From: Oikopleura dioica | Taxonomy: Eukaryota; Animalia; Chordata | Direction of reading: 5' to 3' | Assembly: GCA_907165135.1 (NCBI GenBank) | Contig: OU015568.1 | Span: forward strand, 6,448,001-6,512,000 | DNA: 64,000 nt | In this document: positions 1 through 56,900 of the stretch, one piece after another | Layout of the letters: each line of letters begins with the position of its first letter | Position numbering within the stretch: position 1 is the first letter of the stretch | Position numbers and translations under genes: made by a program | The notes under the pieces: generated by a model | The model's database searches: none | What the model was told of the DNA's origin: nothing | What the model saw: only the letters and a program-made list of their open reading frames with translations

Positions 1-1949
1 CAGGTTCGAACGTAGGCATCCATATCGCCAACAGCAGTGCAGACAGCAGTATCAAGATCACATCCGTCAGTGCTGCAGATGAAGTCTGAGAACTCAACGG
101 CAGTCATGCATTCGTATGATCCAACGTTGTTAACGCAAACATCACCAAGACCTGGGCAAGGGCTAGCCATCATGTCACATTCGTTCTGGTCAATGCAAGC
201 TCCGGTCAGATCAGCGGCGTATCCAACGTTGCAAGCGCAAGTTCGGCTGAGTTTGTCGTCAGAGACAAGGCAAGTAGCACCCTCTTGGCACTCGTAGTTC
301 TCACAAAGACCGTAAGGATCTGGGTGAGTGGGATCTCGGCATTCGTAAGTTCCAACAAGGTCAACGCAGAAAGAACCAACTGGGCAATTATGAGCACCAA
401 CAGCGCAGTTGTCTGGGTCAGAGCAAGTGTAGGAACCGTCAGTAACGACACAAGTAGTGAGTCCCATTGGATCGTCAGCACATGGATTGTCCTCGATGTT
501 GCAGACGTTATTGGGATCAGCGACACCGATGCAGTAGTGGCTACCAGCAGAATTAACGCAAGACTGGTGAACGGTGCAATCGTGGAGGCCAAGATCGCAC
601 TCGTTGTCATCAACGCAAGCGTAGAATGGCGAAGTAGATTGCTCGTAGCAGGAGTATCCAACTGGGCAGAGACCAGCAGCGGAGCAGACCTTTGGTGGCG
701 CAATCTCCAAGCAGAGGAATTTACCTTGGTTGGCGTGGACGTTGTGGCAAACTTCAGCTTCGGGGATACAGTTGTGAGTTCCTTTTTTGCATTCGTTCAC
801 GTCCTGGCAGCCCTTCTTGCCTCGTTGCTTATCACCAAAGAAGTCGTTGGCGGTCATCGAGTTACCATTGCCGACGAGACCGTCCTTGCAGATACAGTCG
901 TATCCTCGGAAAGCATCGCTGGGGACGCAGACAGCGTCGTGGTGACATTCGTGATTACCAGCGGCGCAATAGCTGTTTGGATCTGGCTCTGATGAGCAGT
1001 AGAATCCACCTGGCTGGTTAACGCAAGTTTGACCAACGCACTGGTGAGCTCCGGTCTTACACTCATCGATATCGACGCAACCCTTTGGTCCGTTTGGTCC
1101 GTAAGCGATCTCTTCGGAAGAGGTCAAGACCAAAGAACCGTCGGAGACGACGTACTGAGCATTTCCGTTACCCTTGTAGCCGCTGACGCACTCGCAGTCG
1201 TAACCTCGCTTTTTGGAAGCATCTGGGATGCAGATTGCCATCTCGTGGCATTCATGAGCACCAGCAGTGCAAACGTGGAAGGGATCTGGGAGAGCGGAGC
1301 AGACGAAGGAGCCGTAAGTGTTGACGCACTTCTGGCCGAGCTGGTTGCAAGTGTTGTAGACAGCGCACTCATCAACATCAGTACAGCCGGGCATGCCGAC
1401 TCCGGTGTCGTATTTGAAACCGTTGCCGCCGAAGCCTTCGAAGCACATGCAATCGTATCCTTTTTCGTTGTTGTCTGGGACGCAAGTAGCAGTGGAAACG
1501 CAAGCGTGAGTTCCATCGTAGCAAGCGGCCCCAATTGTTCGAGAACCGCCCTTGGTGGCCTTGCAGTGGTAGCTACCGACGGTGTTGATGCAAGCTTCGT
1601 TGTCGGTACAATCGTGTCGTCCAGTGAGACATTCGTTGACGTCCTCGCAGTGCTCGCCGTCACCGGTGTAACCGTTTCGGCAAGTACACTGGAAGCTGAA
1701 CGCTCCTCGTCGGAAAGTGCACACGGCATCTTCGTGGCAATTATGGGTACCAACGGCGCATCGTGAGGCTCGCTCAAAACCGAAGCTCAAATTCTGTATA
1801 CCAGCATTGGCACCGTTGCTGGCAGTCCCAGAGGCGCTTTGCCCCTAAATCAAGAAATTAGATTTCCGCTAAAGATTTATTCAATCTCTTAAAAATCTCT
1901 AACGAACCTGCACTCCTGCTAAAAATAGCAGTAAAGGGGAGGCCTTCAT
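1..1949 (-). CDS. Secreted calcium-binding EGF-repeat protein (fibrillin/fibulin-like), 3' end runs off the window
   Basis: ATG at 1949 gives signal peptide MKASPLLLFLAGVQ|GQ. A 63-nt GT-AG intron (1907-1845) follows, then one open exon to base 1 with repeated DVNEC/DIDEC...C.N..GS(Y/F).C motifs (more than 10 EGF modules). Confidence 0.9.
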
Positions 1950-2237
1950 GCGTGGAGTGGTTTTGCCTTGCTTCCGAGCTAGAGATCCGAGTTTATATGC
2001 GTTTTAGATAAGCGCCGTAGATTGCGATAGAGATGCGACTTGCTGCGATTTCTGCGGAAACCAACGTTAAGCTGACTAAAATCGCGGTTTTTGTTTAACA
2101 AACTTCGATTGGATTTTATTACTTAGTAAATATGACATTTCGAGTTGCTTTCTAGCGCATGTTATCCTTTTTAGATGTAATATTTACTCAATAAATGTAT
2201 AAAAACGAAACGCTTTTTGATAATTTTTGAAGGAAAA

Positions 2238-2940
2238 ATGATTTTTCTCTGGCTCATTCCATTCCTTGCCGCTCAGGTAATCGAAGAGAAAGAATGCATA
2301 ACTCCGCCGCTGATTACCGACTTTGATCTCGCCGCGTACTCTGGAATGTGGTGGAGCTTAGCGTCCTATCCTGCAAGATATCACATTGAGAATTCAAGAT
2401 GTGTGAGATTATTCTACGACTTGGAGGAGGACAGCGACCGGCTTTATGTTAATAACACTTCATTGAGGCCAGATGATGAGGGAAATTATTACTTAGGGTG
2501 GAGTCAAGGTGCCTGATTAATTATTTATTGGATGAAAATAAATGACTTACTTCAGGATACGGTTATCAACAGTACTCTCGACGGGCGCCGAATCTTCTTT
2601 ATGTGGACTTTAGAAACATTTTTGACCCCGATGAGCTGATCCGTCCAAATTACTGTAAGACGGTCTTACTAAGACCTCCATATTTTTTCCCGAATTTTTT
2701 TCTATTTCAGGGGTCTTGGAGACGGATTATGAAGAATACGTGTACGGAAGCAACTGTAACTACAATGGCACTCACAGCAGCAGATCATTTTGGTTCCTAG
2801 GACGAGAGAAGGATTTCGCCAATTCAGAGAAATTTCAAATGTTGCTGGAAAAAGCCACAAACGACTGGGGATTGAAAGAAGAGTTCCTTGAATATCGCAA
2901 TAATGACAACTGTACCTTTGACTACATACAGGATGAATAA
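2238..2940 (+). CDS. Apolipoprotein D-like lipocalin, 3 exons
   Basis: Signal peptide; SCR1 FDLAAYSGMWW; spliced NYWVLETDYEEY (SCR2); FWFLGR (SCR3). GT-AG introns at about 2510-2555 and 2655-2710. Confidence 0.88.
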
Positions 2941-3615
2941 ATTATCGTTAATGATCACGGAGGCCGAAAAAAAGGAGCAATTAAAACATTCCCCGTGCAT
3001 GTCCGATCTGCTGGCCCGTATTATCCGAGCGATTGATACAGATTTAAATATTTATAATTGAAAAACACTTAGGTCAGTGAGGCGCGATATCGGATTTTAA
3101 TAGCAAATATTCACATGATATCACAATGGCCCTGAAGTGTCCGTTCTTCTGCCTGAGTGGATTCAGTACAGTCGCTTGATATCGGTCAAACCAAGCCGCA
3201 AAAATAAGTTCCAGGGTTTCCTTGAATTTTTCATCTGAAAGAGATAAAGAAGGAGAGTTTCTAGACACCTGTTACTGTCAAAAAGAACCACGGTACCGTC
3301 CAAGCTTGAATGGTAGATAACCATCTAGCTAGTAGCTATACCAGAACGCACTGAAGCTTGACCGTAAATTGAACCGTATCCATGAACCGTAAACCATGAA
3401 AAACGAAGCCCAAATCTCCAAGTCATAAACACTACCTTGACCTCGAGAAAGAGAAAACAAAAATAAAACGAAGAGTAATTATTTTTCAAAACAAAAAGGA
3501 AGCCGGGCAAAATGGATAGAAGCTTGACGAGGACAATAAGGCGGGGATAATAAAAAAACTGTGTGTTTTTGTTGTTGAGGGAAGAAAATTATTCTTCCGA
3601 GATAATGCGCAGAGT

Positions 3616-5791
3616 ATGAATAGAGACGTACAATTATTATCCTGCTTGAGTTTGCTTCTCTTCTCGTTATTGATATTTTGTTATGTTGGATTATTTGAGC
3701 ATGCGGGTTCGTGGTCGAAAATAACCTTCAGGTAAGAATGATTTCAAACCACATTTCATTAAAATTTTCTAGCACTGGAAGATATCCAGCCCCAAATTTT
3801 CTCCGAAAAGCAAAAGTCGAAAGTCCAAAAACTCCAAAAACTACACAGCCCGAACCTCCATCTTTCTCGGAATCGAGTTACTCTGATAATGAACCAACAA
3901 TCCTCTCTTCTAAAAAATCTGTCTCAACGATTCATCTTCGCTCTCCACCACCGAAAAACCCAGATCCTCCAACCAAAAATGAAATTATTCAATTCCCAGT
4001 GAATTCGACGATTCAAGAAAACCACATTTATGAAACTTTTGAAAAAAGAAAAAAGCACCTGAATTTCGTCTGCAAGCGACTGCGACAAGTCGTGGATCTA
4101 AATCAAAATAAAGCGGACAATTTCGACGAGCTCCAACAATTTCAAAAAGATCTTCTTCAGTCAAAAGAAGACGATAAAGCTTGCAAACCGATAACTCACC
4201 CAGCCGGGCTGTTAGATAATTTATTCAAAAGCGAAGGTATTCTTTTTACCTGGACTCAGAAACCTGTGTAGAAAACCTGAGTCAGGGTCTGAAAGAGCGG
4301 CTTTTCATTTCAGCTCTTTCAGACCCTGACTCAGATTTTCTACACAGGTTGTCGAGCCCAGATTACTACTCTCAAATTCGGGGATTATTTCATTTTAGAT
4401 TATAAAATCCGAACTTGTCTACCGACCAAAACTGGGAGCACAAGCTGGTTGAGGACACTCATCTCGCTAGAAACGTACCATGGAAGCAAGAGCCCAGACC
4501 AGGTTCGCGAGTCCTGGGGTTCTTACAGCCAGAGAATGTGGAAAAACGCCTGGCTCCTGGAAGAGCAAGTCAAGACAAAGACAGGTGATCAGGGATGGAT
4601 GAGTTTGATGACTGTGAGGCATCCGATGGCGAGACTGTATTCGGCTTGGAAGGACAAGTTCAGAAAGGGGCAGCCTTGGTTGAAAGTCATTGAGAAGCAG
4701 TTTCAGGTAGGAACTACTCAACGAGGAGGAGTAGAAAAAGCTAAAATGTCTTGTTTTTAGTACTATCTTTTACGACTTGAACGGAACGACATGTCAAACG
4801 CAGCTTACGAGTACTCCTTCGAGGCATTCGTCGAGCTGGTTGCTTTGACAGACTTCGACGGGCAGCGAGATCGGCACTGGACGTCCATTCATACCTATTG
4901 CAACCCGTGCGCCATTCCTTACGATTTCATCGTCAAGCAAGAATACGGCTTTGAAGAAAATGACTATCTCCTGCAAATTTATGACCAAGAAGGAAAATAC
5001 CAAAATTTGAAAAGCATCCCGAAGCGTTCACAGTGGGGACATCAGCTTGACGAGAAACCAATCGAAGTTGAAGACATGCTGGAGCCGTGGAAAGACATCA
5101 GCAAGACGACAATCAAGCAGATTTACAAGACGTTTTATTTAGACTTTGTCTATTTCAACTACAGCATCGACGAATTCATAGCCGTCGGGAAAAACGGTAA
5201 GCGTCTATTCTCAGAATAACGAGTCTTCAATATTGACATCATTTTAAGATGACGGGGTTCTTGATGATGTCAAAAAGACAATGAAGACGAAGATAAACGC
5301 GCAGAGCTCTAAAGTCAAATGGATGGACACCAATCACTGCAGGGACAGTTTTAATGAAGCTTGTCAGTTCACGGAAATGACTGGATATAGGCTCAACTGC
5401 AAGGGTTACAAGCGGCTTTCTTTTTCTACTTACGAAGGTAAAAAAAGGTCTATTTTAGGAGTGTCGTCACGAATCGACAAAAAATACCGAAAAATTTTGC
5501 GTAGGCGGCTACTCGGCCGCTGATTGGCCGGCTAGCCAAATCCAGGCTTCTGATTGGCTGAAAATTTTCACGCAAATTTTTCGTAGTTTTTTGTCGATTC
5601 CTGACACCTCCTCCTATTTGAATGGTTTTTCTCGAAAATTTGCATTAAAATTATGCAATTAATCTTTCAGAAGCAGAAGCATTTGCGTGCGCAGACGAAG
5701 AAATTACTGGCATCGGCCTCTCAGCCGGCCAATACTGCGTCTCTTCGATAGAAGGATCTTTAACGAAGACAACCGAAAAAGGCCGGAGTAG
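3616..5791 (+). CDS. Golgi carbohydrate sulfotransferase (Sulfotransfer_2 / CHST8-14, HNK-1ST family) with a spliced C-terminal extension
   Basis: N-terminal signal anchor and stem; 5'-PSB CLPTKTGSTSW; 3'-PB TVRHPMARLYSAWKDKF; DRHW...YCNPCAIPYDFIVKQE. A GTAAG donor near 5198 joins two further in-frame exons ending at TAG 5789-5791. Confidence 0.85.
4250..4361. mobile_element. MITE family A copy (palindromic, CTGGG...CCCAG type) in a sulfotransferase intron
   Basis: aacctgtgtagaaaacctgagtcagggtctgaaagagc and its reverse complement form a hairpin; same family at 7211, 7959, 12189, 30030, 30908, 31153, 31873, 46703. Confidence 0.8.
5457..5614. mobile_element. Small imperfect inverted-repeat element (MITE-like) in an intron
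   Basis: ggagtgtc..gaatcgacaaaaaa..cgaaaaattttgcgt versus acgcaaatttttcg..ttttttgtcgattc..gacacctcc. Confidence 0.55.
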
Positions 5792-6374
5792 AAGCTGGAT
5801 TAAAAAGGAACACCCCGTTCTTATTTCTAAATAATTAATGCCCTTTTGAGCTGTATTTTGTATCTTTTTGTACAGAAAAGTCTACTTTTGACTGTATATA
5901 AAAATATAGATAAATTATTTTCCAAGTCTCTTTTCTGCGGTTGAATTTGTTTTCGATATTGAAAATAGTCGAGAAGAGAATTGAAGAGTTGAGGTGACGT
6001 CAGATGGTTCTGTAAAAGACAGGGCTTGCATATAGTTACTGACTCTTCGGCTGCTCAAATAATATAATTCAGACGTCAGAGTTCGACATTCACATTATTT
6101 AACGCAGCAAGAGTTGAGCCTTCGCGCAGTGCGAAAAAATCGTTTCTCAGAAGAATCAGATCACATTAGATTTTTTTTATATTCAGACAGATAGAGAGAG
6201 CATTTTGTCGGTCACATCTGCACATCGCGCATTACAGTAGATTACTGTACACGCGGCACAAAAAAAGGATAACTCAGATTATCGATATCATTTGCATCAG
6301 ATATTTTTGTTCAGAGAATGATTTAAAAAATCAGGTTGATTTGAGAAAAACAAACATGCGAAAAGCGATGTAAA

Positions 6375-7461
6375 ATGGGGACATGCTCCTGCTTCAAGAT
6401 CAAAATTACGTTCGAAATTGGAAGCCACTCGGTAAAAAAGTGAAAAAACACGGGATCTTAGGGTCTTTTTCAGCCTGTTCCAAGAAATAATGAAATATCA
6501 GTCACGGAAATCGAAGCAATTCAGCAAATAAACAACCATCTCATCGGTAAGTCGTTCTCCTTGTTGTCTCCAAAAAAGAGCATCATTAAGGAAATGAAAT
6601 TGAAAAGATCCGTAAGCTGCTCCCGTCAGAATATCGCAAGTCTCGCCAAAGGTTTAGCCGCATTTTCATTTCTTCCTCGATTCTGAAATTTATTCTTTAG
6701 CGAAATTGAGTCGCATCTGACGACGCTCAAGAAGATCGAATCCTTTATCCGTCAGGTATGGAAACGGCGAATACAGTACCTGGTAGTCACTTCGTACTTT
6801 TAAGACAAACGCGGAAAAAATGAGCTCTTTCTTTCCGAGCGCGCATCATAGCGTGAACAACAGCGAGCTTCCAAGGAGAGTAGCATCAATTTTAAATGAA
6901 CAAATCATGATTTTGGTTAGCTATCAAAAAAAAGCCCTCAAATCTCCACGACAAAATCACTTTGCGCATCGCCAAATAGAGAGCGCGGCAATACATCCAG
7001 CCGCCTGTTTTTCCATTACCCAAGGCCCGAAATTTTCAAGGAATGGGTGGAACGCCTGGCTGGTTTTATAATCGGAACAACGAGTAACCCATCCAGGTCG
7101 AGTGTAAAAGCTTCACGGCAGTTTCATCTGCGCCTTTTCTGATTTCACCGTCGACGCCAAAAACTTTGAAAAAATATCACTCTTCGTTTACTCCTGGACT
7201 TCGTAAGTGCCTGGACAACCTGTGTAATAACCTGAGTCAGGGTCTAGATTCTAGAATACATCAAACAAGAAGCCCCGCAGCTGCTTTTTCAAAAACAATG
7301 CCGAAAAGCAGCTTCGCTAGAATCAGTAAAAGGATTGGATGGGCAATTTCAGACCCTGACTCAGGTTTCTACACAGGTTTCCGATCTGATAACTCAGATC
7401 TTAATTTGAGAGGCCAGCCGTTTTTAAAACCATTTCAGAATCGACGCCAAAGAAGTGGTAA
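6375..7461 (+). CDS. Small multi-exon hypothetical protein with an MGTCSC N-terminus (possibly lipid-anchored)
   Basis: Chain of short exons with GT-AG boundaries in consistent phase (MGTCSCFKIK..|PVPRNNE..|GNEIEKIRK..|SEIESHL..|TNAEKMSSFF..|..GL|QSTPKKW*). One middle junction is unresolved; no family recognised. Confidence 0.55.
7211..7390. mobile_element. MITE family A copy (intronic, degenerate)
   Basis: aacctgtgtaataacctgagtcagggtct ... agaccctgactcaggtttctacacaggtt. Confidence 0.75.
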
Positions 7462-7596
7462 AAATATATTTACAACTCGTCCAATACAGTCTTCTCTCTT
7501 TACATACTTACAGTCATAAATACAGTAGTACTTATTCATTTGAATAAAGAGAGCCGCTATTCAAGAGCATTCTTCTCTTCGTTGATTTCAAACACA

Positions 7597-13195: not shown

Positions 13196-13891
13196 TTTAA
13201 GAATGATGAGTCTACTGTTTATTTATTTCATAATTATCAATTCATCAGAAGACTTTTGAAGAAAAATTATGCAACATTCAGCAGTTTGTAAAGATCGCTT
13301 TCCAACTTCTGAACTACTCAAGAAGATTAATTGAAGAACTTGAACTTTTTATTTGAAATCTTTCTCGTTCTCCACCAGTATTCAGTGGTGCACCCAGGCC
13401 AAAATCCCCAGGCTCGCTTTTTCGGATCTCCTTTTTGATATCGACTAACGCAGTTTGTTCTTGAGAGGATGCAACTTTCTATTCGATCATTCCACTCCTT
13501 GTTCCACTCATCAACACTTGTTAGAATACATTTCTTATTAAAAAAGAAAAAGCGCTTACGCTTTATCAGTAACCATGAAACAGTCTTTCCGTTCCTCAAG
13601 AAGCGCTTTGATGACATTTATTATAACTTGCAGCTGGCATTCTAAAAGAATATTTATTTGAAATAGCGATTCTTCCTTTCTACCGATCATAAATATCTCG
13701 GAATTGTGCCCTACTCCTGTCATCGGGCCTAATATATGGACAAGATTCGGCACCTTCTGATAAAATACTCCCCAAAAGGTCCTTTTCTCATTTCCTGGTT
13801 TCAGCATTTGAAGATGCGCATTGTCCTTAATGACAATGAATTCAAATTAAAGATTTTAGAAATACTTTTATCAGAAAATTAAGATTCGCGG

Positions 13892-14113
13892 CAGAGTTGG
13901 TAAAAAAGTATACTTCACTCGCCCTTCAGAATGAAGTATACTTCATGAAGTATACTTCAGGGCGTTGCAGGGCGTTGAAGGGCGTGAAGTGGAGGGAGGC
14001 GATTTTCTGGCAGTTAGATTTTCTGGCAGTTAGACTTTCTGGCAAAGGCGATTTTCTGGCAATGCCAGAAAATCTAATATGCCAGAAAGTCTAACTGCCA
14101 GAAAATCGCCTCT
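13892..14113. repeat. Left TIR of the MULE element: gaagtatacttc palindromes plus a hairpin of ~14-bp tandem ttttctggcagttag units
   Basis: Near-identical, apart from indels, to the reverse complement of the hairpin and outer end of 20957-21439. Confidence 0.85.
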
Positions 14114-14951
14114 TTTGATTTCACATCTATAGTTAATGATCCTGGAAGATAAAAAAACGGAGAGAAGAAGAGCTCGGAATTCATCTTCTGATTCTTCTGA
14201 GAAATAGTCAGGCGCGCGTGGGCGGCGCGCTCCTCCCTTATTCGCCGCGCTGTGCTCGCCTGAATTTAGTTGATAAATCAACGGTTTTTTTCAAGCGGAA
14301 ATGATGAAGATCAGAGAAGAATTAACTGCCAGAGGAATTAGAGAAGAATTAACTGCCTATAAAATTTTGCCCAATTCGCTTAAAACTTATGAACTGTGTT
14401 TCCGCTTTGTTTCGCCTCCAAACTTCAACCTTTCGTATTTAATGTATGATGCGTTTTCTTCTCTCTTTCGATGCACAAACCGTTGATAAGTTAAATGTTT
14501 CTATTTTTTTTCAATTTTTGACATTAAAGCTTTACGAGTTGCGAAACTAAAATACTGTCTATCATTTTTAAATTTTAATTCAGAATTTCAATTTCAGAAA
14601 GGACTCAGTGTTGAAAATTGACCATATAAAATAACAACGGGGAGAATATTGAACCCGTTATAATTGTGGGCCTCCAGAAGAATTTACCCGTTATAATTGT
14701 GCCCTTTCTTTAATTTAACATGATTTTGAACTCCTCGAAAGATATTGAAGAACTTCCTGCCAGTATTCTTCTCGCAGACAACAAAGAAAGCTTCCGAATT
14801 CTAGGAACTCGATGAATCAACAAAACGACGTGCTCGATTCCATCTTTAGGAGCTCCAACGAAGAAGAAAAATATATAGGAAAGGAGTTTCGAATTTTCTT
14901 TTGCAATCAATTTTTTCACTTATTGGTTTATTTTTCAGCGGCTTCAATTAA

Positions 14952-15208
14952 CTGAGACGTTACAAATTTACCGGTGCAAATGCGTCAAATACAGTGCTGT
15001 GATTGGCTGAATTAGGGACACGTAGTCCTTTGAAAAATGAAAAATCGCCATAAATCCGAAATTTTTTGAGATCTCGAAAATCTGAGATGATACTGGCATA
15101 GAGCTTGAGATTCTCCGTCGATACGTATAAAGATGTCTTGGGCTACAATGTAACCCTTAGGCGCTAGAGCAACAGCAAGTTTGCCCCGGTAATTTTGTAA
15201 CGGCTCTG
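14952..15208. mobile_element. Nested MITE with ~30-bp TIRs (CAGAG-like termini) inside the MULE element
   Basis: ctgagacgttacaaatttaccggtgcaaa versus tttgccccggtaattttgtaacggctctg; no TSD seen. Confidence 0.6.
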
Positions 15209-15278
15209 ACCTATGGAAATCGTCCGTAACGAATGTAACGAGTTTGATGAAAATGTAAGGAGCTTTTTTTATAGAACA

Positions 15279-18200
15279 TCAGAAGTCTTCTTCGTCGGAA
15301 GTGGCGAGTACTTCTTTTAATTGGCGCATCAAATCGTCATCGTCTTTTTATTATTTATCAAGTTATTCTAATTAAATACAATTAAATAAGAAACCATTAT
15401 ATACGTGTAAACAATCCTGGGATATCTGCTTTTCTCATTTCTTCGCGTTTTCGCAATTTCGCATTTTCCGCCTTCATTTTTTCCAGCTCTTCCCGTAACT
15501 CTGCGATCAACTCTTCATTTTGTTCTTTTTTTCTTTGAATGGTTTGACGCCGTTTATTTGCTATATCAGCATAGTAGCCCTAAATATTCTGCTATTTTCT
15601 TAAAGAAACATACAAGCATTACCTTAGGATCATTTTCTCTTTTTTTTCGATTTCTTTCTTTAAGAATTTTCTTTTCTTTCGCAATTTGGGCTGCCAAACG
15701 CACTTCGGCTTCAGTTTTCTTCTTTTTCTTTTTTGGTGGGGAATCATGCTCGCAATAGGTTGATTTTTTCGCATTCCGCTTCACTTTTGCGCACAAACTA
15801 CGCGTATTTTGCGAAGATTCGGGGCGCTCATCTAGAATAATTAACATTCTGCTTGATAAAACTAAACTTACGATCCGATTCAGAATCTGACAATGAAAGA
15901 TCCCGCGTTTTGCGCTGTTTTGCGGATTTTGCGCTGCGAATATACTTCCGTGGCTGCTTGGGTTCAGATAGAACCAGCTTTTCGGGACTAGTTCTGTCAT
16001 CAAAATTCCGGTAAGAATCAGATGTTGGACGAGAACGATTAGCTTGTCCGGCTTCGTCATTTTCTTAAATGAAAGTCATTTATTTTTTAAATATGGACAG
16101 TTACCTTGCTCCGATTCTGAAGACGAAGGACGATTTGGAAACTGTTTTCTGATCGTTTCATCTATCTCATCGGTTTTATCCAGAAGTCGTTCCCAATGTA
16201 TTGGAGATGGCGATTTTTCAACTAGAAATATTAAATTTTTGATATTTACATTTTTGATATATTACAGTTTTCAGGCTCACGATCCTCATTGTCCGACGGT
16301 AAAGAGTCCACTGGAGGTGGGTCGAACTCATGGATAACAGCTGGCACATCGACTTCATCATTGCTCGTCTCCTCATCGACTCTTCTTTCCACTCTTTGAA
16401 CTGGCTGAGCGATTGGCGCCGCAACTCTTCTCAAATCGAATTCTCCTCCTTGCTGAGCGAAAGGATCTGGGTCAACTTGCTCACCAGCTGTTTCTTGCTC
16501 ATCGCGAACTGGGGACATCACAGGCATTGCTTCTTGAAACTGGTATGACTAAATAATTTTTATTTTTGTATAAAAAATAGTAACTATACGTCAGCTGTTG
16601 ATTCTTTAATCAAATTTTGAAATACAGCAGTTTCTGGTTGCGTGGCGTTGTTGATAAAATGTCGGAGTTTCTGAGTAGATTTCAATGACTCGGCCTTTGA
16701 TCTGGCCCTCATCAAGCCGAAGCCGACAGAAACAATTGCTTCTTCGATTGAGCCATTTTCTGCGCATTTTTTGTCAAATCTTGCTAGCTGCTCGTAGCGT
16801 ACAACCGCAACTAAGGCGCACAATCTGTCATTTTTAGTACTTTGCTGGCTGTTGCTCTCAAGCTTAGCAATTTCCGTACTGAAGCTTTCACTTTTAAAGC
16901 CATTAGCAATGGAGATGACCGTAGATAGCTCTGTCGCATTGTTGATTCCTTGATCCACCAGGGATGAGTTCTAAACATTTAATTTTAGTTGGAATCGCAT
17001 CTTCACGAATTCGATGTTTTTACAAGATTTCCCATCGAAAAAAAGGTAACTTACCATGATTTCAAGACTGTTATTAGTCAAGAATTTTGAACCATTCCTC
17101 GCTCCTATCGATAATGCAAGGGCCCATGAACTAGGAGGGAATTTAGCATCGTCATTCAAGTACGTCGTAGAAAGATATCTGTAGAACTCATTAATCTCGT
17201 CTTTGATTAGTGGTGTAGACAGTTCATCAAGTGTTCGACGCAAAAGCTGCATAAATGTGTCGTAGAATGTAGGTTCGGTCAAGTGAATGAATGGGATCGC
17301 ATGGATGAGTGCTTGGAGTATCTTTCCATTTTTCTCCCAGAGTGCCAACAGTCCATGACTTTGTAAATATCTTCTAACACTCTGTAACCAATGAAAGTAG
17401 CACCCAACCATGCGTAGATTCTTCTCCGGCCATGTTTCGCGAATCGAATTTCTGAGCCCAGGTTCGAAATCGGACGAGACAGTTGTAAATTCAGAATCAG
17501 GACAAAGTTTCTTTTTGTAGATCAATTTACAGTTTTTTCAGGAAAATCGGCTGCTCTGCTATTCAAAACTACCGAACGGCCGATTGTGGTCCTCATCAAC
17601 GTTATTACACACGACAAATTCGCTGCCGAACCAAGTAAGTTCAAAATTTTCAATATTGATCATTTCCTTTAAAGCCTCAAAGACAATCTTGTAGCCTTCT
17701 TTAGACTGACCCTTGAGAATAATAAAGAATCTAGGATTAACACTATCATCTCGGTCTCTTGATCCAATAATGAGGAGTTGACGGTAGCCAAACTTCTTTT
17801 GCTGGCCTTTCGTAAAGAATTTACCGTCAACAAACCAGTGTTTTGAAGAGGTCAGCATGCGCAAATCGTGTTGAGTCGCAAAAGCTAGAGCTTCATCCCA
17901 TATCGGGCTTCGTTGTTCCGGCGAAAGAAACTCATTCATTAGAATCCATTTTGTTTCACCATCGCCTTTTCGTGATTTATTAATGAATTATTACTTTTCA
18001 ATGTTCGTTTCGTGAAACAAAAATGATGTCCTCGTTGTCTCCACCTTACCCCTCATCTTTCGAATCGTTTTTAATCAAGCTACATTTGGTTTAGGTTCCA
18101 TCCGACTAAAGACAGTAAAGTACAATGCAAAACACGAGCACGAATATGTCAATAACTTCAAAGTCTTGCAAAACTCGTTCAAAAAATGGGCGTAGATAAG

Positions 18201-20645
18201 GTTTGTCTTCATCAAAATTATAACTCTACACAGAAACAAGAAATTAGACTACGTTGACGCGCCACAAAGTTATGAAGCAGATTCTGAAACCTTCGCAAGA
18301 CACAATATTCTCTGCGAGAAGAAAGGACTCTGGACTCTGCCAGCTGATTATCCACAGGTAAAGCGTATCACTCAGAACTTTCTTTACAGTTATTCAGACA
18401 ATTCTTGAGTGCTTCCAGCGAGGAAGAGAGACCGCCAGTGATAATGCTATCATTTGAGGCACTCCGACGCCAGATTTGACAGATTACACGACCCGTACTT
18501 ATGGCGAGTTCGCTGCAACATCTCAATACCTGGCGAATTCACTGAAAAAGCACGGACTTATCAGTGGAGAAAGCAAAATTGCGATCTACTCGTCGAATTG
18601 CTACGAATACGACGCAGTAATCATTGGAGGATACTATCAAAATATATGCAATGTTTCGCTTTACGATACTTTTGGTGAACAAGCAGTCAAATACATTCTC
18701 GAGCACGTAAGTTTACAACTTCTTTACGAGATTATTTTTACTTTTTCTTCAGATTGAAGCTCCAATCTGCTTCGTTCAAAATCAAAAGAAACTTGACCTC
18801 ATTCTCAAAATCAAGCCTGCTCATCTTCAAACAATCGTTGTGTTTCGAAAATTCAAGAAGGTCAAGTCCTCCAATTATAAAATCATAAGTTTCGACGATT
18901 TTATTGCAATCGGAAAAGACAGCTCGTTTGATAATGTTCCGCCGACTTCTTCAGGTAAAAATGATAAAAATAGGGGCGATCATTTAATTTCATTATTCAG
19001 ACATTGCTACGATCAATTACACATCCGACACGACTGGCGATCCGAAAGGCGTCGTCTTGACTCACAAGAACATCTGCACCGTCTGCTGTGGCATTACAAT
19101 CTTCTCGGTTAAAGAGCCTTGGAAAACAAGCGACGTCTGGTTCAGCTATTTGCCGATGGCTAATATTTTTTTAAACTTGTTGACGTGCCCGACATGGATT
19201 ATTATGCGCGCGAAGGAAAAGGAGAAATCTGCTTCCGTGGCGACAACGTCATGCAAAGTAATTTCCTTTCACCACTGTCAAGTGTCTCACACTTCGTTCA
19301 ATGGTTTAAAAAGTTTTTCGACGCTAACTATCAGGTAAATCAAAAAGAACGCGAAATCCTTTTTCAATTCTGATTTCAAAGGGAGAACCTCTTGGTCCCG
19401 TTCATGCGAGAGCGAACGCTGGTGTGACTCCCGCTTCAAATTCGCTGCAGTTTCTACAACAGCAAAGAAAGCACCCGCTCGAGCTGGAGCTCCCGCTGCT
19501 CGGGTCCTCGAAGCCCCAAGAACTCCTGCATCGTAAGAGAAGCCGCTTGCGGCTTCGAATTTATGTTAGTTCAGGGAAAGACAAAGGAAAAAGAAGAACG
19601 CACGGCCTCTGCTTTTCTACCGTATCAAGGATGTCCCAAGCTCTAAAGGATAATTCAACTCAAGATTTAACTAAACTATATTCACTGTCATTTCTTTCGT
19701 GCATCTGTGCTCGGTCAAATAAATCACTTTCCTAGTACTGTCATCCAGTCTTCCAAGCGTCGAGGATCAGGAACTGTAGCGGCCTTTATTTTTCTTTCGT
19801 ACTTTCTGGAATTCTGAGCAAGACGTCTCATCTCCTTTTTCGTGAAAAGATTGCCTCTTTCCATGCTCGAAAGTTGTGAATCTTTTTGAACTTCTCCACG
19901 AATTGTCTGTTGACTTTTTGGGCGAATTTGGTTCCTGTTGAGCATGGACACAGTCGTTGCGTACTGTAATCGCTTCTTTTCGAGTGCATCGTTCTTCAGA
20001 CATTTATTCATGTGAATGTCTACTTTCGACTCTAGCTTTCCACATCGCCAATTGCTGAGCTCAAAAAAACGAGGAGATTCCATATCAACAACTTTTGCAA
20101 ACATCCAAATCTTCGTTGAACAGCGGAATGAAGCGTCTTTCGAATATGATTGATTTTCACACTCGACTCGCATCTTGAAACGGAAGTCAGGATCGTCGTT
20201 TTTAGAATGCAGAATCGTTTTCTTCGCTTTTCTTGCTTTGAAAGCAAATGATCTGGAAGCAACTTTGACGAGGAAGGATGCATTGTTTTTTGAGTTTCGT
20301 TGAATCGTTACCAAGGCAGGGTTTTCGACAGTACCACCAATGTTTTCTTACACGTTTTATAAAAATTCATTGACAAAGGCCACTTTTGACCCATTTATTC
20401 AAGATTAATAGCTGTAGCAAACATAAATCAGCTTCTTCCGGGAATTTCTGTGTTAATCACCCGGTGTTTGCATCTGATTTCGAGTACTTGGTCACAGTGA
20501 GCACCCACTGAGATAATGGCGCACGCAAATGCTTTTTGAAACTGAACTTGTTATAAAACTATCCTGAAAATTCTTCCTCAGAAGGTGGTGGAATCGGTGT
20601 CAGTTTCAACATTTTTCTATCCGCATTCTCTTCATCATCCTCCAT
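15279..20645 (-). CDS. MULE transposase (FLYWCH/WRKY-like N-terminal domain, DDE core, basic coiled-coil tail), predicted 11 exons
   Basis: Core: [42 protein letters not shown]. Exon 20346-19732 has C..C..H..C and joins in phase to 17965 (VLG|DGETKWIL). All junctions can be put in phase, four of them needing GA donors. Confidence 0.8.
18186..19260 (+). pseudogene. Long-chain acyl-CoA synthetase (ACSL-like) fragment lying in the transposase intron
   Basis: [38 protein letters not shown] (G to D in the AMP-binding loop), FSYLPMA jumps directly to [23 protein letters not shown] (large internal deletion). In-frame TGA near 18455; host-type introns retained; no C-terminus. Confidence 0.85.
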
Positions 20646-20956
20646 TTTCTCAGAAAAATCAAAATCTAACTTTTCAGCTGCCTGTTAACCCGTTTGTTAC
20701 TCCGAAAATAGCAAGAACGAACTGTGGATGCTGCCCTCATTCTATTTTTAGCGCAGAAATTTCAATTCCAAATTCGTCGTCTTTTTTAGCGCCCTGAATA
20801 GTCGGCTTTTAGATCAAACGCTCCCGTCGAAAGGTGCAAACTCCTGCTGAAACTGCTCCGGAATGAAATTTGTGTGATAATCACCAGTTTTTCGAATTTA
20901 TAAATGATTTTATTAAAAAGAGTTTTTTGCAGAGTTTCAAATAATATGCATACTAA

Positions 20957-21439
20957 AAAGGCGATTTTCTGGCAGTTAGACTTTCTGGCAGTTAGATTTT
21001 CTGGCAAAGGCGATTTTCTGGAAGTTAGATTTTCTGGCAGTGCCAGAAAATCGCCTTTGCCAGAAAGTCTAACTGCCAGAAAATCTAACTGCCAGAAAAT
21101 CGCCTCTCTCCGTGAAGTGTACTTCCGCCCTTCCCTCTACTTCAACCGCCCTTCCGCCCTTCACTCTACTTCAAATTGGTTCTGTCGGCCATCAGAATCC
21201 ATCCGCCAGAATTTTTTCAAATTTCGCGCTTATTGGCTCACAGGCGCCATGATTTAAATCACGCTGATTGTGGCAGATGAAGTGGCAGCTAAAGTTTTCG
21301 ATAAGAACCGATAGCTGAAGTATACTTCAGCGCGTGAAGTATACTTCAGAGCCTTTTCGTACTTCACCGCCCTTCAAGAATGAAGGGCGCCCTGCAGATT
21401 TTTGAAGGGCGGGGGGAAGTATACTTTTTTCCAGCTCTG
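20957..21439. repeat. Right TIR of the MULE element (longer, with an extra internal segment)
   Basis: Hairpin of gattttctggcagtta units followed by gcccttc and gaagtatacttc motifs to ctctg. Confidence 0.85.
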
Positions 21440-22047
21440 ATTCGCGGTCCAATCAAACCCTGTTGCAAAAATAATCACATCGAGTTCATGCTGAGTATCC
21501 TTCGTGACAATCCCATTTTCGCTCAGTTCAATAATTCCAGAGTTGTCCAATTCGTAGCATGGCTCATTGAGAGCCGAGTAAAACTCGTCAGAAATCATGA
21601 TCCTTTTGCAGCCAAGAAGAAAATCAGGAATCATCGCTTCTGCGACCCGTTCATCCTTGACTTCTTTTCTGACTCTCTGGGCATTCTGTTCACACATCCA
21701 GTTGTTGACTCCAAGTTTCCAGAAACGCAAGAGAAGGAAGTATCGGATCTCTCGGTAGATGAATTGAGACCATCTGTAAATTATTCCAAATGGGAATATC
21801 GCTAGAATGCTTTTAGCGAAGTATGAGTATGCAAATTGATCTCGAGGCAGAATAAATGCTGGGCTTCGCTGAAAATGAACAAGCTTTTTAACTTTTAAGC
21901 GACGGAGAATTGTGGGTAAAACTTGGACAGCGGATGCTCCAGAACCGATGATCCCAACACGTTTCTCTGTCAAATCAAGATCCTTTGGCCACTGGGATGT
22001 GTGAATCTTCAGTCCCTTGAAATTCTCGAAGCCTTGAATGTCTCCCC

Positions 22048-22206
22048 CAGGGTTTGAAAAGTCTGAGCATGAGCACTGAGCATGCTCAGCGTGCTCAAGC
22101 TCAACGAAAATTCCAGCGTGTCGTGCTCACCCGTGCTCAAGCTCAATTAAATCTGAGCATTCGCGGTCCATGCTCAGTCAAATTTTGTGACTTTTTTCAA
22201 ACCCTG
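22048..22206. mobile_element. 159-bp CAGGG-type (hAT-like) MITE inserted in BVMO coding sequence
   Basis: TIR cagggtttgaaaa / ttttcaaaccctg; 8-bp TSD gtctcccc (22040-22047) / gcctcccc (22207-22214). Confidence 0.85.
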
Positions 22207-50936: not shown

Positions 50937-53900
50937 ATGTCAGGTAAATCTATCCAAGAGCTATTTTCTTCTGAAAAAATAAAGATTCGGAGATCTGGCG
51001 AATCGTGGATATCCCACCTGTTGTGTCGTCTACTGAAGGCAAAGATGTGACAATAACCGCGAAAATCGCCGGTCCTAGCGAAGGGCCCCAGCCAACTGCT
51101 ACTTGGATCAAGGGAAAATTCTCTGAGCTGAAAAAGTCAGCGCGCCTTGCTCTTGGCATCAACGAGGAAAAGCAAGAAGCCTTTTTGACGATCAAAAAGG
51201 CAAAAATTTTCGACGAGGGGAAGTACACCCTCAAGCTCAAAACCGGCGATCAGGAGGTCCAGACAACTATCCAAGTCAATGTTGGAAAGCAAGAAGTTTC
51301 GAAGCCAGCAACGGTAACTTTTGTTATAAGCTTAGCTGCCAGCTAAAAATGCTTGCTTTTTAGGGCTCTTCAAAAAAGGTATCACGCGAGCTTAACTTAA
51401 TAAACCCGATTTTTATAGATGATGGAATCCATTGTCTAGTGATGATGAATATTTTTTGTAAAGCGCTTACAAAAAAGCTTTCATTTGCTTAGCATACTTA
51501 CAGAAATGTACAGTGGCTAATCAAGAATTGGACCCTGCGATTCTTCGCAAAGAAGGCCACTTTATGATTAGCCACTGTAATAACAGACTATAACTAAATG
51601 CATAGGAGGCTGCTGGAGACGCAGATTCATTCAAAAAGCGAATGCGTCGCTATATGAAATCGGCCAACAAGGCCATCGCTGGAGATCAAGGTGACGTCTG
51701 GATGGAGCTGACGAAAGCCTCACCAAAGGACTACGCTGAGATCGCCTTCAATCATGGAATCACTGGTAATTAATCGCGCGCACACGCAACGAGTCATTAA
51801 TATCTGTCGAATTGACACTATTCAGACCTCCGCGGAATGCTCAAACGTCTGGCTGCTGTCAAGAAGAAGAAGAAAGATGGCGAAAAGGACGATAAGGCGA
51901 GTATCTTTTTATAAACAAGTTTATTTTTAAATTTTGAGTCTTCCTTGATTTCAAAACGCGCTTCAGGAAAAATTAAATTCAAACGACTTGCAGCACCCCG
52001 TCCTAAAAAAGGCTCGACGACGAGGAACGCTCACTGGCGAAGATATGAGTCAACTGCCGTACGACATAAAACTCAAGTGTGGAAAAGCGAAGAAGGGCCA
52101 GGACAACAGCGCGGCGCTCGATTTCCGGTAATACTTCCTTTATGATTGCACTTCCGCGTCATTGACGTCAGCTTGTTTCGCTGAAAAATGATCGTTTAGA
52201 CAACAAGACGCTCGTTTATCATAAAAATTATTGAAAAACAAGTTTCCGAAACTTATTCTCTTAAGATCGCTTCTGAAACACGTCGGAGCATTCTCAAAGA
52301 AGATGGCTCATTCTCTTTCCTTCACCGTCGGCGACCGAATAATGCTAGAAGTTGAAACCTCAAACGAAGTCACCAAGGGCGAGTGGCAAAAGGCCGGAAA
52401 GAAGGTTTGCGAGAACAACCGAATCCGCATCATCCAACAGGGTTGCCGAAGAAGATTGATCATCGACAGCTGTATTTTGTCCGACGATGCGAATTTCTCC
52501 TACGTCTGTGGAACTGAACGCTCAGACTGCGAAGTCTTCGTTCGCGATCTTCCCTGCACCATCATCGTTCCTCTTGAAGACACGCAAATGATCGTCGGTC
52601 AGCAAGTCATCATGACCGCAAAGCTTTCCGTTGCTGGCGCAAAAGCGAGACTTTTCCACGAGGGCTCGGAAGTGAAGATGAGCAAAGACGTCACCTACTT
52701 CGTCAAAGATAAACTATTCGAGTTCCGAATCGACAAGCTCAAATACGACCACGCTGGTTTCTATCAATTGAAAACCAATGGCGATGAATGCCTAGCCGAG
52801 TTGATCGTAGAAGACAAGCCAATCGACTTCTCTTCTGGTTTTTCCGATCTTACTGTCAACTGCACCGAGTATGCGGAATTCAAATGCCAGGTTAATGATC
52901 CTGAAATCGAAGGAAGATGGTACAAAGATGGAATTCCAATCGTCGAAAGTGAGAGAATCAAGTTCGTAAACGACGGATGCTTGAGAAAAATCTGCATTTA
53001 CGATGTCCGAACCAGCGACATTGGCGAATACGAGTATCGATGCAAATCTGGCAAGACCGAACTTTCGATGACTGCTTGTTTGGATGCGATCGAACTTGTT
53101 GTTGAAAAACCAAAGGAACCACCGAAAATCTATTTGAACTTGAATGAGAATCGCGAGGTTTGTGTTAGAGCAGGTTGTAAACTCGTTGTTGATGTTCCGA
53201 TTACGCGGGACTTGCGAGGAAAAGATGAGCAAGTGGGAGTGAAGACGAACAAGATTGAAACTCACGTCGGTAAGCGAATTCAAGGCGGAATGGTTTACAT
53301 TAGGGTCGGAAATTTCAGGGCCATGATCACGGTAGGCGCCGATATTTTTTTGGGTGGACCTTTGGGAGGTACTCTTCAAGAAAAAACACATGGCCCCCGG
53401 TTAACCCATCATCGACAAGCAAATTTTAACCCGTTTTTGAAAATGTCTATTTTTCAATAAAATTACGTATTAATACTATTTTTAATGCTTTTTTATGCCT
53501 GTAAAATCAATAAATTTATATTAGAAAAAATTATTAACCCCTTTTCGACATGAAAAAATTAACCTATTTTTTCAAAAATAGTTTTTTCTTCAAAAATAAC
53601 ATATTAAGTAATCAAAAATGCATTTTTGTGCATAAAAATTCAATAAAAATAAAAAACACGCCCATTTCAAGGGCGAAAATTTAATAGAAATTCTAAAAAT
53701 CGCCCTTTGCCGACCTTTCATCCTCTCTTCTTCGTTTTTTCGCTCTCTTTTCTCCTTTTTCTCCTCTTCTTCCTCTTTTTTCGCCGGCGCGCAACGAGCG
53801 CGCCTCTTGGCCAATCAAAGCCGGGCAGAGCCTCGAGAGCTCGCTCTCAGCGCCTCGCTCGGCGGTCTGGACGGTGGTGGTGCAGCGGCTCGCAGCGCTG

Positions 53901-56900
53901 AGCGCGCGTTAGCGCGCTGCGCTGCGCAAGCGCTTTTGCGTTGGCGTAGGCGTTTTAGGCGTAGGTTCGCGCGTATAAGCGAGATTTTTTCTGCCGGCGA
54001 GCTCAGTCTCCGGACTCACGCCGCCCGTCTCCCCTAGTTTCCCCCCCTTTTTTTTAATAAACTCTTTGAGTTAATTATTAAAAGGGTTAATTATTTTTTT
54101 AACCGAGGTCAGTCCGGTGACCCGACTAATCTTTCGGCAGGCAGCCCCTTGAGCAAGGGTGCAGGAAGTAAATGCCCCCGATTGGACACCCCTAGGCCAC
54201 CCTCACCGGATAGATACTCCTGAAAGATGGAGGTGCGTGGGGGGTAGGGCACGAGCGAAATCTCGAATTTCGCAGTATTGCCCGCAACCCAAGCCCAAGT
54301 CCCACACTATTCCGGCAACCCCGACTCCTGATGCCACCGGACCTCTGGCATCAGGGCCCTAAGGGCCAGCAGAGGTATCTGCCCCCAGGCGAGGCCGCTG
54401 CCCTCTTGTGGAGTGAGGGCGTCCCCCCAGACAGGAGTCACACCACCTTCGGCATGGTGCCTGAACGCTGGGAAAAAGGGGAAACTACGCGGATAACCTG
54501 GGGGAGGGGGGATACTCTGGTTCTAAGGGTTCAAGTCGGGGGACAGGGTTCCGGGGAGACGGGTCATGACGTTTTATTTTTGAATCTTGTTTTTATGCGT
54601 TAATTTAGAGCATAAATATATAGTCGTTTATAAAGTGATTATATATTTAACTTTAATATGCATTTTAGCAAATCAAAAAATAATCGTCAGGGATTGTTTA
54701 GCTATTTATTTCGGTTGTTTAACCACTGAAATCGAATTTGAAGAGAGCCCGACTCTTGAAATTGTCGATGAAATAAATGGCTGGCATGACCAAATAGGCA
54801 ATCAATTCATTTTTCAAGAAGAATGATCGTTAGGTTAAGATTTTCTTTAGTTTAATTATCGATCATTCATAAAGACCAAAAGGAATGAGTTGATCAGTTG
54901 AAATTATTCTTAGTTTGAACGAACGATCACTTATTAAAAGACAGACGAAACAAGAAGACTTTCCAGGAGCTGATGTATTTCAAGATCTTTTTTTACAAAT
55001 CATCAGCATCAAAGGCTCATTTTTATTAATTTTACCGTAGAAGTTATTGTTATTTATGTGCATTCAGACAAAATTTTTTTCTTGTTAATTAACAAGTACT
55101 CTTTTCAGAATCTTTTCGCAATGTTCGTTGAATCCGCCTCGATTGAAGACTTCTCGGTTGTTGCTGTCGAACTCTCCGAAGAAATTCGATTTGAGTACAT
55201 TTGCGAGCTTGCCGACCGGTCGCTTGAACAACTTGCAGCTGATGTTGCAAAGAAAACTTGGGAAGAACTGCAATCAACCGCCCGGACCATTTGCAATTCA
55301 CTTGCTCAGGTTGCAACTGAAGGTAAAAGATCTTATAGAAATTTCTGTTAAGTAAACATCAAACTAGACCCTGATTTCGTTTTCCCGCAGAATCATTGGC
55401 ACGGCGAGAAGAAAAAGGCGTACGATCGAAATGTGGGTGTTCTTCGAAAAGCGCTTCGTAAACTTCCAGAAGATGGAGTTGTTAGACTCATTCGTGTGTC
55501 TGTCGACAAGGAACCTTCTCAATCAAGAAAGCGCAAAACAACAACGATTCGTGATCTGCCTGATGTTGACGAACTAACAATCGATTCATTCGCTTTCCTG
55601 GAAGACAAACTGAACAAACACCAGCTGAACGCGATTTTGATGATTGCGAACGCACAATCTTCTTCGTTTCGAGAACTTCAGCTGAGAAAAGTCGCGGAGA
55701 TTTGTAACGAGACGCCGCCTACCCTAACTGAAGAAGAGACCTTGTCATCTCAACTCGAGGAAGTTGTGATTTCTCAACCGACTTCATCATATTCTCAAGA
55801 GCTGCCAAAAGAAAAGGTGTCTTCAATCATCGACCGAGTTGATCTGAAAGAAAGTTGCCTGCTTCTGAGCACCGAGAAGAATATCGCGCCAGCGGTCATC
55901 AATGATGTAATCGTTGAAGTTTTCCAGAACATCCCTGATGCAATCATCGAGCCTTTTACTGATCGATCTTTGCGAAATCATCTCCCGCTCGTCCAGCCAC
56001 TTCAGCATCAACAAGAAATTGTTTTTATCGAAGAGGCAACAAGTTTATCGATTGGCCTCGACAGTACCACCATCAGTGGGATCGAGTACAGCAGCCTTAC
56101 GATTTTGTCAAGCGACGGAGACTCGCTGTTTTGGGATATCAAGAAGGTTGCTGACCATTCTGGCGCTACCGTTGCTGATCAGTTCAACTCGAAGATGAAA
56201 GAGTATCCGGAAGATATTCAACGACTGATCGCTGAAAAGACTCAAAGCCTTCACAGCGACAGGGCTCCAGCAGCGAAGAAAAGTGTGGAAATTATCAAAA
56301 AATCACTTGATAAAGTCTGCGCTCGAGATCGAGTCTACATACCTTGCAGCATGCACATCCCGTTGAACTGCGAAAAGGGTCTTCGAGCTTCGATGCCAAA
56401 GGATATCCTCGATCAAGTGGCCCTTCTAGAGAAAGTTTTATCATCCCATCGCCTGCATCAAACGAAATCCTCCAAGGGAGCTGACTTCTTGACATTCCTG
56501 AAAGCGAAGAAGCTAGGATCCGAAAATGTTCTTCTCGAATCTCTTGCACTCTACTCCAATGTCAGATTCTCCGTCTTCGCGAAAAACCTCGAAAACGTAC
56601 TGATCAATCTGCCTTACATTGAAGAGTTCTTGTCACGAGAAGGCCACAAAACAACTTCGAAGTTCATCACTGACAACAAACAAAGGTTCCAAGTCGAACT
56701 TCTCGCGGCGATCTTTGTCTACAAAAACGTCGTTGCTCCTTGGTGGGAAAAAGTTCGAGCGAAATCTGATGTCGAGTACTATGAAACGCTCAAACAAGAG
56801 CTTGACCTCACTTTCGAAGGCATCATCAGTGCTGCAAGTCCTTTCATCGTCGTGAGGAGCAAGAGCAAAAATCTGATGTTGCAGAATGACGGAGAAACCA

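Follow-up and report, generated by a model that had tools for sequence, protein, structure and literature searches.

The stretch analysed here (the window) comprises 64,000 nucleotides of the forward strand of contig OU015568.1 (positions 6,448,001 to 6,512,000; assembly GCA_907165135.1) from the chordate Oikopleura dioica, and it contains a gene for a BVMO/FMO-like flavin monooxygenase, one coding exon of which is interrupted. The upstream part of this exon (...DVIIFATGFDWTAN) occupies 21448-21973 of the minus strand, and its last 18 nt, encoding LNFLIK, are found at 13866-13883, after which a GT-AG intron of 40 nt (13826-13865) leads into the next exon. Between the two parts, an 8-bp target site duplication (TSD), ATTCGCGG, is repeated perfectly at 13884-13891 and 21440-21447, and the 7,548-bp unit that it encloses (13892-21439) starts with CAGAGTTGG... 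and ends with ...CCAGCTCTG. A preliminary description of this DNA had read the unit as one intact 7.5-kb Mutator/Phantom-like transposon inserted in the exon. When OKI2018_I69 is searched genome-wide with the unit, two nested elements emerge instead: unit positions 1-100 and 7220-7548 are found together, as contiguous sequence, at many loci, and positions ~100-7220 are found without the outer parts at four other loci with ~100% identity. The outer parts are the arms of a 420-bp miniature inverted-repeat transposable element (MITE), and the inner part is a Mutator-like element (MULE) of 7,119 bp. With a probability of about 0.9, the site has received two successive cut-and-paste insertions, nested one in the other, of a hAT-type MITE and then of the MULE.

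The MITE is divided into a left arm of 100 bp (13892-13991, plus strand) with the terminus CAGAGTTGGTAAAAAAGTATACTTC and a right arm of 320 bp (21120-21439, plus strand). At thirteen or more other loci the 420-bp element is uninterrupted, so that the left arm continues directly into the sequence from 21120 onward and the 9-mer CGTGAAGTG is present once; in the window, this 9-mer stands on both sides of the MULE, at 13983-13991 and at 21111-21119, as the TSD made by the MULE within the MITE. Because the MITE exists elsewhere uninterrupted with one CGTGAAGTG, and because the MULE has a 9-bp TSD of its own, the MITE must have entered the exon first and the MULE must have entered the MITE second. 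In the proposed course of events, a 420-bp non-autonomous hAT-type MITE would have inserted in the BVMO/FMO-like coding exon, 18 nt before the 3' end of the exon, with duplication of ATTCGCGG, and a 7,119-bp, autonomous-looking Mutator-like element would then have inserted in the left part of the MITE, with duplication of CGTGAAGTG.

The hAT superfamily is recognized by 8-bp TSDs, the target consensus nTnnnnAn and termini of the 5'-YARNG type. The MITE family found here consists of dozens of copies in two subfamilies, of 420 and 389 bp, and a pattern of its 25-nt terminus has 44 matches in the genome, compared with none for the reversed control pattern. Perfect 8-bp TSDs flank 22 of 24 further copies examined, in addition to the window copy. 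In these duplications the second base is usually T and the seventh A; most of them conform to GTnnnnAC or at least to nTnnnnAn (GTTGGAAC, GTCCTGAC, GTTTATAC and ATCCAGAC are examples); the termini of the MITE are CAGAG...CTCTG. The 8-bp TSD, the target consensus and the CAGAG terminus together point to a MITE of hAT type, as judged from target sites and termini only. The genome contains hAT dimerisation domains at nine places. A hAT-like element is also present elsewhere in the window (53293-58280), with different termini (TAGGG...).

The MULE extends from 13992 to 21110. Its left terminal inverted repeat (TIR) of 120 bp (13992-14111, plus strand) is internally palindromic with 16-bp units (GATTTTCTGGCAGTTA), and its right TIR of 152 bp (20959-21110, minus strand) is a hairpin of 16-bp units; the longest arms measure 87 nt and are 98% complementary. 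As DNA, both TIRs form near-perfect hairpins, of -50.2 kcal/mol on the left (z = -13) and -71 kcal/mol on the right (z = -17), and these hairpins of 16-bp units are probably the binding sites of the transposase. The preliminary description had reported inverted ends built of nested palindromes and 14-bp tandem units. Such structures are indeed present, but the ends are composite: the foldbacks belong to the inner MULE, the unit of which is 16 bp, and the 14-bp tandem unit (13931-13959) lies within the left arm of the MITE. The 9-bp TSD, which has the length typical of MULEs and falls in their range of 8-11 bp (PMC6446971), and the long TIRs are features of Mutator membership.

Four other full-length copies of the MULE are present in the genome. 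They are 99.87-99.93% identical to the window copy over 7.1 kb (BLAST), with 0-1 substitutions and 3-7 single-base indels; all full-length copies start with GAGGGAGGCGATTTTC and end with GAAAATCGCCTCTCTC, and the 9-bp direct repeat around them differs from copy to copy. Moreover, 9-bp TSDs are found in 15 of 15 elements, five of them full-length and ten shortened by deletion to 1.2-2.8 kb, the number of derivatives with such a TSD being a lower bound (at least ten). Most deletion derivatives retain a subterminal region (20318-20958, minus strand), which contains a short upstream open reading frame (ORF) at 20559-20645. With 99.9% identity among five copies, no more than one substitution in 7.1 kb and a separate 9-bp TSD for each copy, the family is very young. 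This agrees with the recent insertion proposed in the preliminary description; the family has moved very recently in Okinawan O. dioica, and it may be active at present.

Further nesting accompanies this family. A small repeat of ~260 bp with 27-nt inverted ends (14954-15214), common to the full-length copies, is also found alone at no fewer than six loci with 91-94% identity, and probably represents a third nested MITE family. The derivatives of 2.77 kb (C4:7908565-7911332) carry nested copies of two other MITE families, of 764 bp and ~570 bp, each with at least 20 copies. These derivatives had been considered as further Pack-MULEs, a candidacy that was rejected because the extra DNA consists of the other MITE families and includes no host genes. 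Insertion of one transposable element into another is common in this genome.

When the insert and one ATTCGCGG are removed from the interrupted exon, the frame ...FATGFDWTAN|LNFLIK is restored, as the preliminary description had stated, and homologs from metagenome assemblies are uninterrupted at the site (FATGFDLSSNFNFLxEV). The empty site is also preserved in the same genome. A cluster of three tandem BVMO/FMO-like genes lies on chromosome 2 (C5:14182082-14188499), and one of its members shares 91% protein identity and 92-94% DNA identity, introns included, with the window gene; at the site in question this paralog reads ...aattaagATTCGCAGtccaatc..., with one octamer (ATTCGCAG) and no insert. 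The window gene, a dispersed duplicate of young age, is situated on the PAR contig and has received two insertions: a second small MITE (CAGGGTTTGAAAAGTC...CCCTG, TSD of ~8 bp) occupies ~22048-22206 of the same exon and is likewise missing from the chromosome 2 paralog. That the exon is interrupted was thus seen correctly in the preliminary description; the interrupting element is the MITE, and the MULE went into a MITE that was already there. On this haplotype the frame could stay open only through splicing of the insert, and this copy of the gene may well have lost its function.

The transposase gene of the MULE runs on the minus strand, where the motifs WFVDGKF, SDFEP, GCYFHW and TNNSLE supply the first D, the second D, the CxxH and the E expected of a Mutator transposase, in agreement with the residues noted earlier. 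The first D is encoded in an exon at 17613-17986 (D1 exon), and the second D, the CxxH and the E are encoded in an exon at 17055-17510 (D2 exon), the start of which is a predicted one. Exons for the C-terminal part, with a long acidic/basic tail, follow within 15282-17252. This part is represented in the OKI2018_I69 annotation by the deposited models CAG5105060 and CAG5078757, which cover only the C-terminal part from 17252 down to 15282 and include an 84-nt GT-AG intron (16971-17054) after the catalytic E (LEIM|NSSL). The frame requires at least two introns, of which one is that in the annotated gene model and the other comes from comparison with a related element on metagenome contigs. The latter intron, between the two catalytic exons, is placed at 17511-17612 with an uncertain donor (17600-17615), and several in-frame GT-AG solutions would take out the two in-frame stops; in the related element, the catalytic exons lie in different frames and can therefore be joined only by splicing. 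Taken with such introns, the element may be intact, as the preliminary description had it.

Searches with the transposase were made exon by exon rather than with a joined protein. Among 1.84 billion representative proteins, the D2 exon has 215 matches at E<=1e-3, and the closest named relatives are hemipteran proteins designated 'MULE transposase domain-containing'. In the 41 longest relatives, the Pfam MULE domain (PF10551) is detected 39 times and FLYWCH (PF04500) 19 times; their consensus is DGTF ... DFExA ... GCxFH ... RTxNxxE, and the D, D, C..H and E of the element align with nearly invariant columns. The D1 exon matches the profile of these 41 relatives with a probability of 96.6% and E=6.8e-10 (hhalign). 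The MULE-type DDE domain with CxxH after the second D is therefore recognized by way of homologs, and the assignment of this putative transposase to the Mutator superfamily rests on transitive homology. A genome-wide scan with PF10551 missed this MULE family altogether. Elsewhere in the genome, an intact ORF contained in a single exon is present at C1:5820499-5822214 (571 aa) and another at C5:10116268-10117986 (572 aa). Both have a MULE core, recognized by Pfam at E=1.8e-5 in the first and 9e-5 in the second, and a Cys/His-rich region at the N-terminus; they could belong to another MULE family or be domesticated genes.

Upstream of the catalytic core, the minus strand carries ORF1 (19724-20314; 196 codons) with a conserved C-x12-C-x35-H-x3-C pattern. 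The related element, of the same layout, was found on two metagenome contigs that are mutually 99.7% identical (ENA ERZ27264819 k141_32507 and ERZ23499026 scaffold_39381), and its nucleotide identity with the window element is 78% in ORF1 and 70% in the core. Between the two elements, dN/dS amounts to 0.13 in ORF1 and, in the D1 and D2 exons, to 0.21 and 0.09, respectively, which indicates that ORF1 and the core have both been kept by selection. The similarity of the two elements starts abruptly at a conserved ...AAAAG|G near 17986, probably a splice acceptor. Conservation extends to the stop of ORF1 and to the ...AAAAG|GCGATGGTGAAACAAAATGG that precedes the D1 exon but not to the ATG of that exon, a pattern that favours an upstream exon spliced onto the core. 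No canonical donor in the right phase was found for a splice from ORF1 to the core. One spliced protein and two separate proteins, ORF1 and core, are both possible, at about even odds; in either form, as N-terminal exon of the transposase or as a separate DNA-binding protein, ORF1 probably supplies DNA binding.

ORF1 has so far been met only in Oikopleura-like sequences. A word search returned one relative, and the ESM Atlas gave no usable ORF1 match. Distant copies of ORF1 adjoin distant MULE cores on contig C3. In addition, a stand-alone ORF1 paralog of 351 aa is located at C4:5829793-5830848; it matches ORF1 with E=1e-11 (BLASTP), no adjacent DDE core is present in the 6 kb examined, and the short upstream ORF at 20559-20645 resembles the N-terminus of this paralog. 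A Pfam match of ORF1 to U3_assoc_6 was discarded as probably spurious, as it recurs weakly in the related ORF1.

The nested arrangement has to be weighed against several other accounts of the same DNA. The single transposon originally proposed, an intact 7.5-kb Mutator/Phantom element whose CAGAG...CTCTG ends form part of complex foldback TIRs and which entered the BVMO exon directly with an 8-bp TSD, would account for the perfect duplication of ATTCGCGG and for the inverted outermost ends, and an 8-bp TSD falls inside the MULE range of 8-11 bp (PMC6446971). It is nevertheless extremely improbable: the four other full-length copies end with GAGGGAGG.../...CCTCTCTC, without outer arms and with TSDs of 9 bp, the outer arms constitute a separate 420-bp element present at no fewer than 13 sites with 8-bp TSDs, and within the MITE the inner element has a duplication of 9 bp on either side. 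The octamer ATTCGCGG, taken in the preliminary description for the TSD of a Mutator element, hence belongs to the MITE, and the TSD of the MULE is CGTGAAGTG. A further possibility is that MITE ends and MULE now move together, as a macro-transposon of 7.5 kb mobilized by a hAT transposase. Left and right of the MULE, the MITE has kept intact termini, and hAT transposase genes exist in the genome, but the assembly contains only one composite copy, and apart from it no pair of MITE TIRs lies more than 1 kb apart genome-wide, the other paired termini being 162-870 bp apart; joint movement is accordingly given very little credence.

Two other accounts question the locus or the gene rather than the mode of insertion. 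A repeat-induced mis-join might have placed a MULE copy in a MITE copy, as both elements are multi-copy, the Okinawan assembly is based on Nanopore reads (PMC8008620) and the junctions are not bridged by contigs. However, exact duplications of 9 and 8 bp flank the inner and outer elements, and removal of the MULE restores a 420-bp MITE with a single CGTGAAGTG. Since a mis-join does not create matching TSDs, an assembly artefact is most unlikely. The transposase-like gene could also have been domesticated by the host and not form part of an active transposon, a view to which the strong purifying selection on ORF1 and core and the stand-alone intact MULE-like ORFs of this genome would lend support. 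Yet five 99.9% identical copies reside at unrelated sites, each with TIRs and a 9-bp TSD of its own and in the company of many deletion derivatives, and purifying selection is expected along any active transposon lineage, so that domestication has hardly any probability. The nested insertion of a hAT-type MITE and a MULE is thus retained.

Some observations count against this reading and have to be set beside it. An autonomous hAT element with the TIR of the MITE was not found among the TIR pairs of the genome or in the hAT-like element of the window. On the transposase, the exon of the element itself scores only E=0.072 with Pfam MULE, below the cut-off, a weakness attributable to the splitting of the domain by an intron. 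The Pfam search that the preliminary description had suggested is positive for MULE through the relatives of the element and negative for FLYWCH in the element itself: FLYWCH, common as it is among the long relatives, was detected here by neither Pfam nor hhalign (ORF1 against the relatives, probability 0.2%), and ORF1 shows no FLYWCH or other named DNA-binding domain at Pfam E<=0.1. An AlphaFold model of ORF1, built from a three-sequence alignment, has a pLDDT of 58.5 and is unusable. In addition, the D2 exon shows single-base indels in three of the five copies, either true frameshifts or homopolymer errors of Nanopore sequencing. Finally, an RNA run yielded a single read in 6 kb and left the BVMO exon without any; it is thus uninformative and may come from another lineage.

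This RNA run was compared with 15700-21699 together with three DNA contig runs (X1, X2 and X5). In the DNA runs, contiguity is lost at the junction. Those of X1 leave the BVMO flank uncovered, and the flank contig of X2 is the chromosome 2 paralog, since all seven listed differences match the paralog. One contig of X5 starts exactly at 21447; a structural and a single-base variant would both give such a start, which is therefore not evidence. MULE depth is ~3.5 times that of the contigs taken as the ACSL parent of the MULE cargo described below, a hint, by the poor measure of contig depth, that some of the five MULE insertions are hemizygous.

Between ORF1 and the catalytic core, the MULE carries fragments of host genes, antisense to the transposase. 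A fragment of a long-chain acyl-CoA synthetase (ACSL) gene with exons and introns (18232-19289, plus strand; AMP-binding domain, E=6.7e-12) is flanked by two EB1-like pieces (17991-18231 and 19293-19533, both plus strand). The two EB1-like pieces derive from the same parent locus on chromosome 2, with 96% identity to C5:8788017-8788258 for the first and 93% to C5:8787661-8787902 for the second, and the ACSL piece, 96-97% identical to C5:11755755-11757347, derives from another locus on that chromosome. The first parent encodes an EB1-type N-terminus (CH domain, E=1e-4) and a ...EEY tail, and we take it to be an EB1/MAPRE gene; the second is an ACSL gene of the AMP-binding kind. At the sharp breakpoints of the cargo, microhomology or filler amounts to 0-3 nt, the pieces include introns, and the ACSL piece has an internal deletion of 539 bp at 19169/19171 that ignores exon borders. 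The retained introns, the sharp breakpoints and the exon-blind deletion argue for capture at the DNA level and not for retroposition. Because the cargo is common to all five copies, it was captured before the latest burst of transposition. In X5, from another individual, one contig joins 18231 to 19293, which may be a variant without the ACSL piece or simply the EB1 parent gene; other X5 contigs match the MULE backbone and the EB1 cargo with 96-98% identity.

The related metagenome element has an equivalent spacer of 1.0 kb, which contains an antisense fragment of VPS28 (PF03997, E=9.5e-13, better than the Pfam cut-off; k141_32507:932-1099). At ~19620-19700 of the window, a faint VPS28-like remnant may persist, the similarity being weak. 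An intron probably makes up the spacer that separates ORF1 from the catalytic exons. It might be speculated, with more doubt than confidence, that this Oikopleura MULE lineage has a preferred capture site in the ORF1-to-core spacer, into which host fragments, always antisense, have been taken up repeatedly. If so, and if the cargo is transcribed in the transposase pre-mRNA, antisense RNA against host genes would be produced, and such RNA could affect host gene expression or transposon silencing.

O. dioica, whose genome ranks among the smallest of any animal, is generally regarded as poor in DNA transposons. The present locus documents a recently mobile Mutator family, with five copies of 7.1 kb that differ by at most one substitution, and a hAT-type MITE family of dozens of copies, with insertion into coding sequence and into each other. 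That Pfam alone misses a transposase split by introns helps explain why such families go unclassified, as do 44% of the repeats of the Okinawan assembly (PMC8008620). The presence of host-gene fragments in a transposase-encoding chordate MULE extends transduplication, known mainly from plants, to animals, and with its few near-identical copies the family offers a tractable system for the study of gene capture. For annotators, the lesson is that a TSD and a transposase that occur together need not belong to one element.

The components of the locus, namely a MULE, a hAT MITE, a nested insertion and transduplication, are of known kinds. The MITE agrees with other hAT-superfamily MITEs in its 8-bp TSD, its GTnnnnAC or nTnnnnAn targets, its CAGAG termini, its length of 389-420 bp and its dozens of copies. 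In the literature, no account of MULEs or MITEs in Okinawan O. dioica was found, and gene capture by MULEs was found discussed only for plants and fungi, with none for animals.

Among animal MULEs, Phantom and Muta1 form group 20 of Dupeyron et al. 2019 (PMC6446971). Tunicates enter the literature found only as hosts of MULEs of this group, which has TSDs of 8-10 bp, TIRs of 18-613 bp and one or two ORFs (PMC6446971). The window element shares with these MULEs the 9-bp TSD, the long TIRs and a DDE transposase with CxxH, and about half of its long relatives have FLYWCH; it differs in the lack of a detectable FLYWCH or SWIM domain, in an ORF1 with a CCHC-like pattern of its own, in TIRs that are self-complementary hairpins and in a gene split by small introns. 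An N-terminal FLYWCH is a feature of many Phantom members, although it is not obligatory in the clade (PMC6446971, Table 1). In its hairpin ends, the window element further calls to mind foldback-type Mutator elements. One of these, Tm1 of root-knot nematodes, reportedly combines modular termini of short tandem units that fold back with a Mutator-type transposase. The likeness lies in the modular foldback termini, which in the window element are short (120-152 bp) and not arrays on the kilobase scale. The foldback TIRs and DDE/CxxH transposase first attributed to the whole unit hold for the inner MULE.

With the Pack-MULEs of plants (criteria in PMC8616336), the window element has in common the intron-containing fragments of several unrelated host genes between TIRs, the sharp breakpoints, the parents elsewhere in the genome and a TSD around the whole unit. 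In contrast to these, it keeps a transposase, with DDE core and ORF1, and is thus not a non-autonomous Pack-MULE; moreover, its host is a chordate, its cargo lies antisense in the ORF1-to-core spacer, and a related element holds another gene, VPS28, at that place. Novelty lies in the family, the host and the layout: the MULE of a chordate, apparently autonomous, has TIRs in the form of hairpins, an ORF1 so far confined to Oikopleura-like sequences, and antisense host-gene fragments in the spacer between ORF1 and the catalytic core.

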